Sequence record: MW248466.1
DNA: 64,000 nt
Strand: one strand, 5' to 3'
This document shows, one piece after another, positions 43,061 to 51,485 of this stretch. Position 1 is the first letter of the stretch. Each line of letters begins with the position of its first letter. A model generated the notes under the pieces. It saw nothing but the letters and a program-made list of their open reading frames with translations, had not been told where the DNA came from and made no database searches. The translations under genes and the position numbers were made by a program.

Positions 43061-44294
43061 ATGTCTAATCAAGATAATAAATATGAACGTAAAAGAGCTA
43101 TAACAGGTTATTTAGAGAATTTAATCAAATTAATTAAAATAAGAAAACCTGATATTGATAATGAAAAATTAATTAATGCTTGTAGAGAGTATATTAAAAA
43201 ACATGTAGATCCAGCTTTAATAGAAATATCTGGACAAAAAATGAATGTGGATACAACCTTAAGACAAATTATTGATAATAATTTAATTGTAACTGGGTCT
43301 GGTTCTATTTATCAACCTCAATCACAAAGAAAAAATTTAAATGCAGATATGTTAAAAGACTTTATAGATTCTCGTAAAGTAGCTAAGCACAATATGTTTA
43401 TTTATAAAGGTAAAGATGATGTTTTACATGATAAATATATGAATGAACAAAAAACAATTAAGATCTTAGCTAATAGTTATTACGGTGCTATGATTCAGAA
43501 GAATAGTACATTCTATGATTCTAATTCAGGTCCAGCAACTACTTATAGTGGTGTTGATATTGTAACTACTTCAGCAATAGCTTTAGAAAGATTTATTGGT
43601 GGTAAAATCTTCTTTATGAATATTGCTGAAATATATCATTATATATTAAGAATAATTAATGAGAAATATGAAGATCATGATATTAAGATAAAATCAATTC
43701 CGACTGATAGAAAAATTCTAGAAGATTTAGTTTCTAATATTGAAGAAGATTATAGTGAAGAAGAGTTTCTTAAATTAGAAGATGTATTTAGTAAATTAAG
43801 TCAAGAAGATAAAAATAAAGTATATTTCAAAAATAATTTATCTGGATTAATTGATCATACCGATATATTTGAGAATAAAATTAGCAAAATGACTGGTAGA
43901 GAAGATTTCTTAGATCCAAACGAACCACCTGAAGATTTGATTCCATTATTAGATGAATTATTTGAGATATTAAAAGATTGGGTTATATATAATTATCAAG
44001 ATTACAATAGAATGTATAGAATGAATTACAAGAAACGTAGAAGTGTTCTCACAATTGACACAGATTCAAATTTCGTTCACTTAGATCCATTATATGAAAA
44101 AATGAAATCATTAAAACCTGAAGATTTCCCTATTGCAGAAAATGGTTTAGAAGATAAATTAGAACAACGTGTAGGTAATATATCTATTATTAACTATCAA
44201 ATAACTAAATTATTAGAATTATCTTACTATAGATTCTGTAAAGATGTAGGATTAGAAGAAGAACATTTAGGTTTAATATCAATGAAAAATGAGT
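43061..44294 (+). CDS. family B DNA polymerase (polymerase domain), exon 1
   Basis: KILANSYYGA (motif B), TIDTDSNFV (motif C), MKNE at the exon end; spliced to 44481-45181 gives 644 aa. Confidence 0.85.
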
Positions 44295-44480
44295 ATTATC
44301 AAGTTAATGCTCCGTTGTATAGTGATATACAGAAAGACAAATTTATTAATTGCTGGGATAATTCATTAATTAAATCAGCATCTTAAGAAATTAAGTTCAA
44401 CGACTAAATATAAATATACTTAATATAAAGTATAAGATATAGTCTAATCTTTATTAAATTAATAAAGACTAATAAAAATG
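44295..44480 (+). ncRNA. ORF-less group I intron (186 nt) in DNA polymerase
   Basis: P1 GAGU|AUUA/UAAUGCUC with U44294-G44309 wobble; AAUUGCUGGG (P4), AAUCAGCA, GUUCAACGACUA (P7), AAGAUAUAGUC; ends in G44480; splicing restores MKNEFLLDKQLTTDKKKTYA. Confidence 0.9.
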
Positions 44481-45181
44481 TTTTACTTGATAAACAATTA
44501 ACAACTGATAAAAAGAAAACTTATGCATCATCAGTAATTCAACAAGAAGGTAATTTAGTTCAACCACCAGATTTAGATGTTAAAGGTATGGCTATCAGAA
44601 AAGTAAATACTAATAAACGTATTAGAGAATTATTTACTGAAATATTACAAAAAGATATTTTAGAAAATAAAACTGGTGTAGATCGTATTAAGATAATACG
44701 TAAATTTAAAGATATTGAAGAAATGATTAAGAAATCATTAGATAATGGAGAAATTGAATTCTTAAAACCATTTAAGGCTAATAATGCTGAGGTATATAAA
44801 GATCCTTACTCTCAAATGGCATATAGAGCTGCTTTAGCATGGAATATAATGTACCCAGAAAAAGAAATAGCACTACCTGCTAAGATATTAGCAGTTAAAT
44901 TAAATATTAGTACATTTGGAGATATTAAAAATAAGATAACTGATGAAGATACTTTAAATAGATTTAGAGAAGTATTTAAGAATGAAAGTTTAGTTAAAAA
45001 TGGTTTAAATGTAATTGCAGTTGAAGGTAATACAATTCCTGAAGAGTTTAGACCTTTTATTGACTATGATAGTATGATTGAAGATCATATTAAACCAGGT
45101 AAAGATATTATTGAATCTATAGGAGTTAGAGTATTGGAATCTTCAAATAGCTCATTTGTATCTAATATGATTAAATTCTAA
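44481..45181 (+). CDS. family B DNA polymerase, exon 2
   Basis: KKKTYA...EG...LDVKGM polB thumb-region motifs lie upstream of the track's ATG 44588 and are in frame after splicing. Confidence 0.85.
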
Positions 45182-47971: not shown

Positions 47972-48005
47972 GCCATGTTAAGTTTATAGCTTAACATGGC
48001 TTTTA
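47972..48005 (+). terminator. intrinsic terminator-like hairpin
   Basis: GCCATGTTAAG...CTTAACATGGC + TTTT. Confidence 0.6.
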
Positions 48006-48054: not shown

Positions 48055-49216
48055 ATGAAAATAGATATGATCAACGTTGATCAAATTATTACAGCTTATG
48101 AAGCTAAAGAAGTTACAAACCCTATTTTCTTTGATTCAGGAACTTTACCTAAAGAAGACGGTTTATTCTCATATGAAATATTTGGTTTAATAGGTACTGA
48201 TGAAAGAAAGAATAATGTAGGTTGGATTAATCTAGGCGGTAAATACCTAAATCCTGTAGCTTATAAATCTATGAAAGAATTAGATAAAAATGTCGATTTA
48301 TGTATTCAGGGATCTGATTACTTTAAAATTGAAAAAGGGCAATTAGTTCCAGATGAAAATGGAGAAACTGGGTTAAATTTCTTATACGATAATTATGAAA
48401 ATCTTAAATTTAGAAAAAATGATTCTCGTATCCGAAATGAAAAAATTGATATGCTTAAAAATACTCCTAAAGATAGAATATTTACAGATAAATGGCCTGT
48501 AATACCTGCTTTCTATCGTGACTTTAACCCTAATGAAACTTCAGGAGAAATTCAGGATACTGAAGAAATAAATGATATGTATGCAAGTATCTTAAGATCT
48601 GTAGATTCAATTAGTTTTAATTCATTTGAATTTGTAGCTAATACGACTAAATATAATATTCAAAATAAATTATTTGAAATATATGTTAAATTAACTTCAG
48701 GTGAACTATCAGGTAAAACTGGTATGATGCAAAGAAATATTTTAGGTAAAACAGTAGATAATAGTACTCGTTCAGTTATTTCTTCACCTAAAATTAATTC
48801 AAATAAATGGAATGAAATGCAAATTGAATTCGGTCAATTAGGTGTTCCGTTAACTCAATTAATAACATTATTCTTACCTTTCTTTAGCAAATATATTATA
48901 GACTTTATTGAAATTCATAAAGATGCTTTCCAAACTGCTACTGGAACTGATGAAAAAGAATTATCGCTAGAAGAAGTATATGAACAATTTGATGATAAAT
49001 CTATTAAGAATATGTTAGAATTCTTTATTAAAGATCCTAATGAAAGATTTAGTCCTATATATGTAAATGACAGACAAGGTAAACGTCATAAAGTTAAATT
49101 ATTTGAAAATACTTTAGGCAGAACTTTTACTGTAATTGATTTACTTTATATAGCTGCTACAGAGATATGTGAAGATAAGCATGTAGTTTATTCGAGGTAC
49201 CCGATTGAAAATTTCC
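48055..49216 (+). CDS. rpoC: RNA polymerase beta' N-terminal subunit, exon 1
   Basis: DGLFSYEIFG, GWINL, PVIPAFYR, GKTGMMQRNILGKTVDNSTRSVIS, RYP; four exons join to 503 aa. Confidence 0.9.
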
Positions 49217-50692
49217 GTGCGAAGTGTTTCCCTATAAGTGCTTAAAGCATGAAATGGGATAGTTTTTATTTTATATAAAAATGAAACTTTAATAGAGATG
49301 ACTGGTAACGGTCACATAGACACCTACATGCATTGTGAGTAATTACTTTGTATGAAGCTAGGTAATATGGGTCATATATGGTGACGAATAGGAACTTCTT
49401 ATGATGTCCTTTAAAATGAAGAGAGTAGTTTGGAATGGTGAAATCTTCTTTAAGTGTTTTAAAGGGTAGAGGGAGCACCTAAGTATGATATACTATCTAT
49501 TAAGGAACGCTTGAGATCCAATAATTGTTTTAATATTGGAAGTCAGCAGACCATAGTAGCGTTGAAGCTTTGTAATAAAAGTGGAGCGAAGGGTCATAGT
49601 CAATAAAAGAAAACTTTTTTAATAGAAAACTTTTTTAATGAACAATAAGCTATTAAGATATAAAGGAATGATAGCTTATGAATATTAAAAAAATGAATCA
49701 AGATCAAAAAAATGAATGGTTTCAAAATAAATTAGATGAAAAATATGATTCTGATAATAGATTATTATTATTAAGTGATTATAAAACTACTCATGAAAAA
49801 GTTAAAATAAAGTGTTTAAAATGTGGTCATGAAGATATTAGGAGACCTGCAGTCTTAATTCAAGGAAATAGATGTTCTAGTTGTGGAAATAGAAAAAGAT
49901 ATACAACTAAAACACTACAAGAAAGATTTGATGAAGTTTATCCTAATGAATATGAAATTTTAGAAGAATATAATGGTCATATAAGAGATAAAATGAGAAT
50001 AAAACATATTCCTTGTGGGGAAATTCTTCATAAATCTCCCAATTCTATTTTAAATACTGGAAGAAAATGTCTAAAATGTTCTAAACTCAAAAAGAAATCT
50101 ATACAGGAAACACAAAATTTAATTGATAGTAAATTTAAGGAAAGAGAATTTACAATTGTTTCTGAAGAATATATTAATAAAGATACTCCATTAAATATTA
50201 AACATGAAAAATGTGGAAATATAATAAATATTTCATATACAAATATACGAAATGATGTTTTTTATTGTAAATATTGTAATAGAAGTAATGGAGAACTATT
50301 GGTAGCTAATATATTAGATGAGTTAGGCATTGATTATGAGATAGAATATAATCACGAAAAAGTTAAAAGTTTAAAAAATAGATATATGCCTTTTGATTTC
50401 TTCTTTAAAATTAATGGTAAAGAATGTGCAATTGAGTATGATGGAAGACAACATTTTGAAAAAGATTACATTGGTTTTAAAGATGAAAAATCATTTGAAG
50501 AAAGAGTCAAAAAAGATTTACTTAAAAATAAACTTTGTGAAGAAAATAATATTAATCTATTGAGAATCCGTTTTGATCAAAATAAAACTATTAGAAAAGA
50601 TATTTTTGAATTTATTGATGGAACGCTGTATGCGATGAAAGTCGCACGTACAGTGTGAAGCGGGGGAAAATCGTAAGATTACCTATCGCTAT
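49217..50692 (+). mobile_element. group II intron (1476 nt, no RT) in RNAP beta' gene
   Basis: 5' GUGCGA at 49217; 34-nt domain V ACGCUGUAUGCGAU-GAAA-GUCGCACGUACAGUGU (50623-50656); domain VI with bulged A50685; 3' ...AU; removal restores RYPIENFLNVAPAKIKILT. Confidence 0.9.
49678..50658 (+). CDS. intron-encoded putative homing endonuclease (Zn-ribbon repeats + Vsr-like/EDxHD-type nuclease)
   Basis: Three repeated CxxCG/HxxCG...CxxC units; C-terminal GE..VANIL...PFDFF...AIEYDGRQHF...DLLKN...NINLLRI; RBS AAAGGA. Confidence 0.8.
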   Translation: MNIKKMNQDQKNEWFQNKLDEKYDSDNRLLLLSDYKTTHEKVKIKCLKCGHEDIRRPAVLIQGNRCSSCGNRKRYTTKTLQERFDEVYPNEYEILEEYNGHIRDKMRIKHIPCGEILHKSPNSILNTGRKCLKCSKLKKKSIQETQNLIDSKFKEREFTIVSEEYINKDTPLNIKHEKCGNIINISYTNIRNDVFYCKYCNRSNGELLVANILDELGIDYEIEYNHEKVKSLKNRYMPFDFFFKINGKECAIEYDGRQHFEKDYIGFKDEKSFEERVKKDLLKNKLCEENNINLLRIRFDQNKTIRKDIFEFIDGTLYAMKVARTV

Positions 50693-50883
50693 TAAATGTC
50701 GCACCTGCTAAAATTAAAATACTAACTACCGTTGATACAATTCCAGAAATTACTTTAGATGATATTGTACTTAAAGATTATCCTAAAGTTGTTCATGAAT
50801 ATCCTGTTGATGAAGATGTATTTATAGATACTGCCATTATACACAATTCATATGCTGGAGCACTCGGTGCAGATTTTGACGGT
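50693..50883 (+). CDS. rpoC: RNAP beta' exon 2
   Basis: LNVAPAKIKILT...HNSYAGALGADFDG. Confidence 0.9.
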
Positions 50884-51041
50884 AAGTTATATTGCCGTAT
50901 TTAAATATTATTAATTGCTGGGAGAGATTATCATCTTAATCAGCATCACTACAAATAGTGTTCAACGACTAAATATAATATGCTTATTTAAAGTAAAGAT
51001 ATAGTCTGATCTATATTATCTTAATATAGATAACATAAATG
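50884..51041 (+). ncRNA. ORF-less group I intron (158 nt) inside the catalytic DFDG|D motif
   Basis: P1 ACGGU|AA/UUGCCGU with U-G wobble; AAUUGCUGGG, AAUCAGCA, UUCAACGACUA, AAGAUAUAGUC; terminal G51041. Confidence 0.9.
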
Positions 51042-51167
51042 GATATGATCTCTATAAGATCTCTTTGGACAGTAGAGGCTAATAAAGAAGCTAATAAACT
51101 TCTTAATAAGAAAACCAACTATCTAAACTACACTGGTAATTCAGTACGTAATTTGGGTAATGAGAGT
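51042..51167 (+). CDS. rpoC: RNAP beta' exon 3
   Basis: DMISIRSLWTVEANKEA...GNSVRNLGNES completes GADFDGDM. Confidence 0.9.
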
Positions 51168-51307
51168 AACATGCTTGTATGCTCTCAATAAATAATATTA
51201 ATTGCTGGAAAAATCTAATTAGATCAATCAGCATCAACTTCATATAAGTTGTTCAACGACTAAATATATTACTAAGAAGATATAGTCTAATTATCATAAA
51301 TAATATG
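51168..51307 (+). ncRNA. ORF-less group I intron (140 nt)
   Basis: P1 UGAGAGU|A/UGCUCUCA with U-G wobble; AAUUGCUGG, AAUCAGCA, UUCAACGACUA, AAGAUAUAGUC; P9 AUUAU/AUAAU; terminal G51307. Confidence 0.85.
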
Positions 51308-51340
51308 GTACAAGCTTTATACTCTTTAACTAAAGAATAA
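51308..51340 (+). CDS. rpoC: RNAP beta' exon 4
   Basis: VQALYSLTKE*; spliced GNESVQALYSLT resembles bacterial SQDVVLGLYYMT. Confidence 0.8.
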   Translation, partial: VQALYSLTKE

Positions 51341-51350
51341 TTTAAAAAAC

Positions 51351-51383
51351 AGAGGTAACGGACAATTATAGTTCGTTACCTCT
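51351..51383 (+). terminator. hairpin after beta' gene
   Basis: AGAGGTAACGGAC...GTTCGTTACCTCT. Confidence 0.55.
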
Positions 51384-51416: not shown

Positions 51417-51429
51417 AAATATATATTAT
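51417..51429 (+). promoter_or_regulatory. AAATATATATTAT motif (putative early promoter)
   Basis: Exact 13-mer. Confidence 0.6.
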
Positions 51430-51485
51430 AATTATGAAGTTGATAATTATTAATCAACTAATATAATAAAAAAGGATGGATTTAA

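Follow-up and report, generated by a model that had tools for sequence, protein, structure and literature searches.

In this study we analyze 64,000 nucleotides (nt) of sequence record MW248466.1 (record bases 62001-126000; hereafter "the window", in whose numbering positions are given unless a record base is named). The window is part of the 266.6-kb genome of the jumbo phage Staphylococcus phage MarsHill, and we concentrate on the gene at 48055-51340, which encodes the predicted N-terminal beta-prime subunit of the virion RNA polymerase. We find that this gene very probably contains three self-splicing introns, one of group II and two of group I, and that their removal would yield a protein of 503 amino acids (aa). 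In a blastn search of phage genomes the segment is a full-length, 100% match to record bases 110055-113340. MarsHill is an AR9/PBS1-like phage in which several polymerase genes are interrupted by introns, with exon joins predicted through protein alignment to AR9 (Korn et al. preprint).

The headline novelty of this arrangement is low: earlier publications cover the group II intron with its unusual endonuclease, as well as the invasion of the gene family by both intron classes. What appears to be new is the third intron together with the final exon, which corrects the gene model, and a family of miniature group I introns, in part lacking the P8 helix, which standard scans miss.

Exon structure and identity of the gene

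The exon boundaries are set by relatives that carry the same gene without introns. In phages PALS_2 (locus L002:1501-3012) and SA1 (L003:1501-3012) the orthologous coding sequence (CDS) is annotated as uninterrupted, with 1512 nt and 503 aa. Joining the four MarsHill exons gives the same 1512 nt and a 503-aa product ending YSLTKE*, which aligns end to end with both proteins with no gaps and with the same residues at all three junctions; over exons 2-4 the protein is 100% identical to that of the intact PALS_2 gene. Because the flanking bases differ at each splice site, the cut positions are unique at all three junctions. At the nucleotide level PALS_2, S6, UFV_DC4 and SA1 match the MarsHill query only over about 1475 contiguous bases (blastn).

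Pfam returned no match for the exon-encoded pieces, and the beta-prime identity comes from PDB and PHROG searches with the PALS_2 ortholog. This protein matches the beta-prime chain of the AR9 polymerase (PDB 7S00/7S01 chain d, E ~1e-11) and PHROG 2986 (E = 3e-110), and its residues 404-501 align with residues ~412-514 of bacterial beta-prime, which covers the part encoded by exons 2-4. On this homology the predicted gene product is the N-terminal beta-prime subunit of the MarsHill virion RNA polymerase, an enzyme of the AR9/phiKZ type. The sequence GADFDGD occupies residues 446-452 of the product, so intron 2 falls between the G and the final D of this metal-binding motif. A preliminary description of the same DNA had proposed exons of 1162, 191, 126 and 33 nt, 1512 nt in total, and a 503-aa beta-prime N-subunit that ends at YSLTKE*, near the split point of phiKZ/AR9-type RNA polymerases. 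Alignment to the intronless orthologs reproduces all of these lengths exactly, the translation and the PDB and PHROG matches agree with the proposed product, and the AR9 ortholog does end at the same point, with the similar tail AIQAIYSLTRE.

One group II and two miniature group I introns

Intron 1 begins with GUGCG (consensus GUGYG) at 49217-49221, directly after exon 1 and at the boundary fixed by the intronless orthologs. When the whole window is searched with Rfam at its gathering thresholds, the sole match is that of domains V and VI to RF00029 at 50621-50692, with 57.1 bits against a gathering score of 40; domain V starts with the CGC triad, and domain VI aligns to its consensus with the branch-point A present. 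The ribozyme sequence also aligns with the group II intron of AR9, which itself reaches 80.7 bits on RF02004. The open reading frame (ORF) of intron 1 does not encode a reverse transcriptase or maturase; its product matches endonuclease PHROG 559 (E = 5e-60) as well as PHROGs 681, 7140 and 9084, has a weak Pfam match to DUF2726 at residues 250-309, and is 34% identical (E = 1e-40) to AR9 g147, which is encoded in the AR9 group II intron. We see repeated CxxC pairs and an EYDGRQH motif in the protein, and the assignment of its domains as CapR-like repeats and an EDxHD/Vsr-like nuclease rests on Merk, Jones and Eddy (NAR 2025, PMC12350094).

An endonuclease in place of a reverse transcriptase is a known minority arrangement among group II introns, and phage group II introns with endonucleases of this kind were first described from four examples, of which intron 1 of MarsHill is one (Merk et al., PMC12350094). 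Their Table S1 lists MW248466 111217-112691 as class IIB with triad CGC, 5' GTGCG and 3' AT, encoding an endonuclease; we place the 3' end at record base 112692, one base further, because the RF00029 match and the intronless alignment require it. In public sequencing runs X16 and X18 (labeled "RNA?") we also find a contig that is ~96% identical to the 5' ribozyme part of intron 1 (49238-49629). It diverges at 49629, just 5' of the endonuclease ORF, which implies that a variant of intron 1 without this ORF exists elsewhere.

Introns 2 and 3 have the architecture of group I introns at a very small size (Table 1). In both, the last exon base is a U that pairs with a G of the guide, and the bases just 5' of the guide pair with the first five to six bases of the next exon to form P10. 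P7 has a bulged C before a G-C pair, and J8/7 reads AAGAUAUAGUC. Three motifs are common to introns 2 and 3 and to a copy in the DNA polymerase gene: a word at J3/4-P4, CAACGACUAAAU at P7, and AAGAUAUAGUC at J8/7-P7'. When a 451-nt segment is searched, RF00028 aligns with both introns over the full model, at 39.2 bits for intron 2 and 32.6 bits for intron 3, with large deletions where P2 is expected and, for intron 3, where P8 is expected. The covariance model R1 gives intron 3 a score of 118 bits. Folding z-scores are -3.2 and -3.4 for introns 2 and 3, and the minimum-energy folds recover P1, P4/P5, P6, P7, P8 and P9. The G+C content of the two introns is ~27%, and P3 of intron 3 consists of five A-U pairs. 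Each intron also contains an early in-frame stop, 7-9 codons past the 5' splice site, where it is read as the eighth to tenth codon; for intron 2 it is counted as the seventh codon of the intron. Phage introns often have early stops of this sort, which prevent ribosomes from entering the ribozyme core.

The group I structure can be examined further in related copies from other Staphylococcus jumbo phages (last section). When 38 non-redundant copies are aligned by plain MAFFT, the drawn structure pairs in 82% of cells as against 32-45% when the partners are slid, with a covariation score of 0.33 as against less than 0.09. Alignment to a covariance model, with up to 43-44 copies, raises these values to 87% paired and a covariation score of 0.41. 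Changes on both sides occur in P3, P5, P8 and P9 across the 38-44 family copies. P4 and P7 do not vary in any of 43 copies; 90% of P3 is paired, five of its seven pairs being altered on both sides, and the J8/7 core is invariant in the family. One group II and two group I introns, as the preliminary description had it, is thus the composition that the RF00029 match, the full-model RF00028 alignments and the family covariation give. Its remark that such a mixture in one phage gene is unusual is fair, though the mixture is not new: the group II intron stands in Table S1 of Merk et al. (PMC12350094), who showed the beta-prime gene family to be invaded by both intron classes, and the mix in AR9 is annotated in GenBank.

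Table 1. Features of the MarsHill beta-prime gene in window coordinates, and intron insertion sites in its orthologs in coordinates of the spliced coding sequence.
Feature	Position	Strand	Details
Exon 1	48055..49216	+	1162 nt; codons 1-387 and base 1 of codon 388; gapless alignment to PALS_2/SA1; tblastn aa 1-387
Intron 1, group IIB	49217..50692	+	1476 nt; 5' GUGCG; domains I-III ~49217-49610; ORF in domain IV; domains V-VI 50621-50692; 3' end AU
Intron-encoded homing endonuclease gene	49678..50658	+	326 aa; zinc-ribbon-like repeats and C-terminal Vsr/EDxHD-like nuclease (domains as described by Merk et al.)
Exon 2	50693..50883	+	191 nt; final codons encode GADFDG; ortholog alignment
Intron 2, group I	50884..51041	+	158 nt; no ORF, no P2; terminal G 51041
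Intron 2 P1	50879-50883 / 50894-50898	+	ACGGU with GCCGU; U·G at splice site
Intron 2 P10	50889-50893 / 51042-51046	+	GAUAU with AUAUU
Intron 2 P3	50905-50911 / 50975-50981	+	
Intron 2 P4	50916-50920 / 50941-50945	+	
Intron 2 P5	50924-50928 / 50933-50937	+	
Intron 2 P6	50947-50951 / 50956-50960	+	
Intron 2 P7	50965-50970 / 51003-51007	+	
Intron 2 P8	50982-50985 / 50991-50994	+	covaries in family
Intron 2 P9	51010-51018 / 51022-51030	+	
Exon 3	51042..51167	+	126 nt; first residue is last Asp of DFDGD; ortholog alignment
Intron 3, group I	51168..51307	+	140 nt; no ORF, no P2, no P8; terminal G 51307; unannotated in GenBank
Intron 3 P1	51162-51167 / 51181-51186	+	GAGAGU with GCUCUC; U·G
Intron 3 P10	51175-51180 / 51308-51313	+	GUACAA with UUGUAU
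Intron 3 P3	51194-51198 / 51266-51270	+	
Intron 3 P4	51203-51207 / 51229-51233	+	
Intron 3 P5	51213-51216 / 51221-51224	+	
Intron 3 P6	51235-51240 / 51246-51251	+	
Intron 3 P7	51256-51261 / 51284-51288	+	
Intron 3 linker in place of P8	51271-51276	+	6 nt, P3' to J8/7
Intron 3 P9	51290-51294 / 51300-51304	+	
Exon 4	51308..51340	+	33 nt including stop; encodes VQALYSLTKE*; not in GenBank gene model
Terminator-like hairpin closing upstream transcription unit	47972..48000	+	13-bp stem, then T run; Madawaska annotates a terminator at the equivalent place
Terminator-like hairpin past the gene	51351..51383	+	10 nt past stop codon; 13-bp stem, 6 G-C pairs
Insertion site	CDS 1151		Machias, PB50, AH12, LY01
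Insertion site	CDS 1162		MarsHill; AR9 at homologous codon
Insertion site	CDS 1330		LY01; group I intron ~405 nt
Insertion site	CDS 1338		AH12
Insertion site	CDS 1344		LY01
Insertion site	CDS 1353		MarsHill, Madawaska, Machias, PB50, AH12, LY01; AR9 at or adjoining
Insertion site	CDS 1479		MarsHill, LY01, Machias, PB50, AH12

Splicing, the GenBank gene model and the alternatives

GenBank carries the gene as CPT_MarsHill_113, "viral RNA polymerase beta-prime subunit", with a hand-joined, three-piece CDS (110055..113191) and a "homing endonuclease" gene annotated inside it. The expectation of the preliminary description that annotation would miss exons 2-4 therefore holds for exon 4, and with it intron 3, and fails for the remainder, since exons 1-3 are already joined in the record. 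Record base 113191 (window position 51191), where the deposited CDS stops, is also the last base of the first in-frame stop past exon 3 (51189-51191), 24 nt into intron 3. Because this stop is inside intron 3, the deposited protein has a seven-residue read-through tail that replaces VQALYSLTKE; its C-terminus is wrong, and intron 3 and exon 4 are unannotated. The two models predict different C-termini, …GNESVQALYSLTKE for the spliced form and …GNESNMLVCSQ for the GenBank read-through. Three predicted tryptic peptides span one junction each, namely YPIENFLNVAPAK, one ending …GADFDGDMISIR, and NLGNESVQALYSLTK, the last across the exon 3/4 join (51167/51308). The correction reaches beyond MarsHill, as the same unannotated intron and 33-nt exon affect LY01, Machias, PB50 and AH12, where the exon 4 peptide likewise lies beyond the annotated CDSs.

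In the course of splicing that we propose, the primary transcript would span between the two terminator-like hairpins; with strong hairpins on both sides, the gene looks like its own transcription unit. Domains V and VI would release intron 1, which lies inside codon 388, through either branching or hydrolysis. Introns 2 and 3, the latter 33 nt before the end of the stop codon, would leave by guanosine-initiated transesterification, with one contiguous internal guide sequence per intron aligning both exons through P1 and P10, and their early in-frame stops would bar ribosomes from the ribozyme core. Intron 1 is most likely moved as DNA by its free-standing endonuclease gene in domain IV, whose product would cut alleles that have no intron. 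Near 51425-51440, before the next gene, there is an AT-rich promoter motif resembling TATATTAT, a type reported by Korn et al.

We infer that splicing takes place in MarsHill because the subunit is essential, the exons are perfectly conserved, the ribozyme cores are intact, exons 2-4 are without start signals, and the mature mRNAs and coding sequences of AR9 are stated to have been determined experimentally (Korn et al. preprint). Several observations weigh against the proposed reading. For intron 1, models of domains I-IV score near or below their cut-offs (RF02001, 31.8 against 32 bits; RF01998, 26 against 35 bits). A search of the intron against the 5' exon for exon- and intron-binding sites (EBS and IBS) gave no clear EBS2, and its EBS1 candidate, GGAAGU at intron positions 322-327 pairing with AUUUCC, is ambiguous and overlaps a predicted stem. 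For introns 2 and 3, the RF00028 scores are below the gathering score of 50, and the same model finds no group I intron when segments of 5 kb (E up to 10), 32 kb or 64 kb are searched. It may be doubted that intron 3, with no P8 and with an all-A-U P3, splices unaided. Finally, the public sequencing runs gave no MarsHill splicing reads. In the RNA-seq contigs of runs X25 and X26 all three joins are present at ~91% identity to MarsHill, and this identity points to an SA1-like phage with intronless DNA as their source; runs X16 and X18 hold only the related group II fragment described above.

One alternative is that the gene is a decaying pseudogene, or that its pieces are translated as separate polypeptides with no need for splicing: exon 1 alone is an ORF of 396 aa, and the polymerase subunits of jumbo phages are naturally split over several genes. 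We regard this as extremely improbable, as it would sever the catalytic DFDGD between G and D and leave exons 2-4, which have neither start codons nor annotated ribosome-binding sites, in perfect protein identity to an intact gene, between intron cores whose conservation includes compensatory changes. We also rejected a pseudogene, inteins and translational bypass, since in-frame stops and a ribozyme core are found in every insert and exon conservation is perfect. That the GenBank model is right, with intron 3 retained and the protein stopping past exon 3 in the read-through tail, is also very unlikely. The deposited CDS does terminate at an in-frame stop, but the decapeptide of exon 4 is identical at the ends of the intact PALS_2 and Madawaska genes and similar in AR9, the insert has a full set of P1, P10 and terminal G with a guide that pairs with exon 4, and the same order, with exon 4 located 3' of the equivalent intron, is repeated in LY01, Machias, PB50 and AH12.

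A different question is whether introns 2 and 3, though derived from group I introns, are autonomous, or whether a phage or host protein or another RNA is needed to fold and splice them, intron 3 being the likelier case. Many group I introns do rely on protein cofactors, the RF00028 scores are under the family threshold, and intron 3 lacks P2 in addition to P8 and has the all-A-U P3 noted above. We consider dependence of this kind unlikely on balance, with a real chance of being correct. P4, P7 and the J8/7 core are invariant, no cofactor gene is evident adjoining the introns, and the P8-less form (11 of 43 aligned copies) is clearly viable, since essential genes, among them that for gyrase B in LY01, contain or adjoin some of these copies. 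Self-splicing of all three introns remains the reading that we favor.

Intron occupancy in relatives and the miniature group I family

We mapped insertion sites across the orthologous loci by placing the SA1 protein on them (Table 1). All seven sites are within the last 120 codons, around DFDGD, and none is in the first 383 codons. The insertion hotspot around the active site, which had been suggested from the MarsHill gene by itself, is real in this survey of orthologs. If sites were uniform and independent, the chance that all seven fall in the last 24% of the gene would be ~4e-5; sites are not independent, so the figure is only indicative. Insertion at conserved active-site codons is expected behavior for mobile introns (review text), and the variation in intron content among close relatives fits that expectation. 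The seven sites in 120 codons are a clean example of mobile introns accumulating at the active site of an enzyme.

Madawaska, whose genome is ~92% identical (Korn et al. preprint), has neither the group II intron nor the third intron. Its intron at the DFDG|D site (CDS 1353; the bar marks the insertion) is a different group I intron of 1472 nt (L004:2854-4325), with the gene for a 378-aa endonuclease placed after the 5' splice site and before the AUAUUGCCGU guide, the same guide as in MarsHill. Rfam gave no match for this 1472-nt intron, and its group I core was seen on reading the ends. The LY01 ortholog (OR836606.1, L126:2640-4050) contains five introns of group I. The 11 codons that encode AGALGADFDGD hold three of these, which leave micro-exons of 14 nt and 9 nt; the LY01 record annotates this gene only as disconnected "hypothetical protein" fragments. 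In AH12 (L128:4020-4215) an additional mini intron makes a 15-nt micro-exon. Its sole in-frame junction has C, not U, at the 5' splice site, and no convincing P1 was found for this intron.

Among the closest known systems is g145 of the Bacillus phages AR9/PBS1, the orthologous virion RNA polymerase beta-prime N gene, described by Merk et al. 2025 (PMC12350094). Like MarsHill, it has a group IIB intron at the homologous codon (RYPIENF|L in MarsHill, RYPIEQY|… in AR9) with a homologous endonuclease, and a group I intron at or adjoining the DFDG|D site, the mixed introns of AR9 being annotated in GenBank. The two differ in that the AR9 group I intron is ~1.9 kb with its own endonuclease gene, whereas those of MarsHill are ORF-less with 158 and 140 nt, and in that AR9 has no intron at the third site.

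Outside this gene family, several introns in one Staphylococcus phage gene have a counterpart in Twort orf142, which Landthaler and Shub reportedly described in 1999 as one gene with three group I introns. Those introns are all group I, self-splicing and ORF-less with short exons, and roughly at least 250 nt long with the full helix set; MarsHill, in contrast, mixes classes, and its group I introns are far smaller. Yeast mitochondrial COX1 differs from MarsHill in that the gene is organellar, its splicing is assisted by proteins, and its introns are large and mostly have ORFs. The usual "minimal" natural example of a self-splicing group I intron is the Azoarcus tRNA-Ile intron of ~205 nt, which is G+C-rich and keeps P2 and P8. 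It shares with introns 2 and 3 a compact core without large peripheral domains, whereas the MarsHill introns are 140-158 nt with ~27% G+C, and intron 3 is without P2 and P8.

Searching with intron 2 (blastn), we find 132 matching places in six Staphylococcus jumbo phages: 9 in MarsHill (a blastn count only), 11 in Madawaska, 20 in PB50, 29 in Machias, 30 in AH12 and 33 in LY01, and none in the four phages with intronless genes. For LY01, nhmmer gives 34 copies in 249 kb of genome, and the P7…J8/7 pattern is present in more than 120 viral contigs. P8 is replaced by a linker of ~6 nt, as in intron 3, in the 11 P8-less copies mentioned above. It is possible, and we put it forward tentatively, that introns 2 and 3 are members of a so far undescribed group I family whose introns are miniature (~140-190 nt) and ORF-less, a quarter of them without P8, with ~9-34 copies per genome in these six phages.

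To our knowledge P8 is present in characterized group I ribozymes. Our literature search turned up neither a smaller group I intron with a complete core nor one without P8, and we treat this as a lead rather than a claim. As a minimal group I scaffold of natural origin, the 140-nt form without P8 is directly testable; should it prove to be self-splicing, few natural group I ribozymes would be as small. With normal filter settings, RF00028 detects no group I introns in the window or in loci L004, L005, L126 and L128. Since the model misses the miniature introns, a survey based on Rfam would record no group I introns for these genomes, and phage introns are undercounted.

Elsewhere in the window, the gene for the DNA polymerase I catalytic subunit (43061-45181) contains the third miniature copy, with P2 and P8, at 44295-44480 (186 nt). 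Its junction is fixed by alignment to intronless SA1, the guide GCUC pairs with GAGU at the exon end, the last intron base is G, and GenBank joins two exons at this place.

In LY01 (L143-L147, 249 kb) we count ~30-34 miniature introns, often three to four in a row per gene region (for example L145:37951-39241, L143:40366-41138 and L147:33666-34446), and we know of no report of comparable intron density in any phage. Sub-families can be recognized in which the same guide follows the same short exon word at unrelated sites (L146:27972-28182, L146:27222-27434, L147:41786-41997, L147:26119-26329 and L146:15600-15801). The sets of words and guides are CGAU| with GUCG at three sites, CUGGGU| with GCUCAG at two, and GUG(G/A)GU| with GCUCAC at two. 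Guides and target words shared in this way would fit a spread of the introns by reverse splicing.

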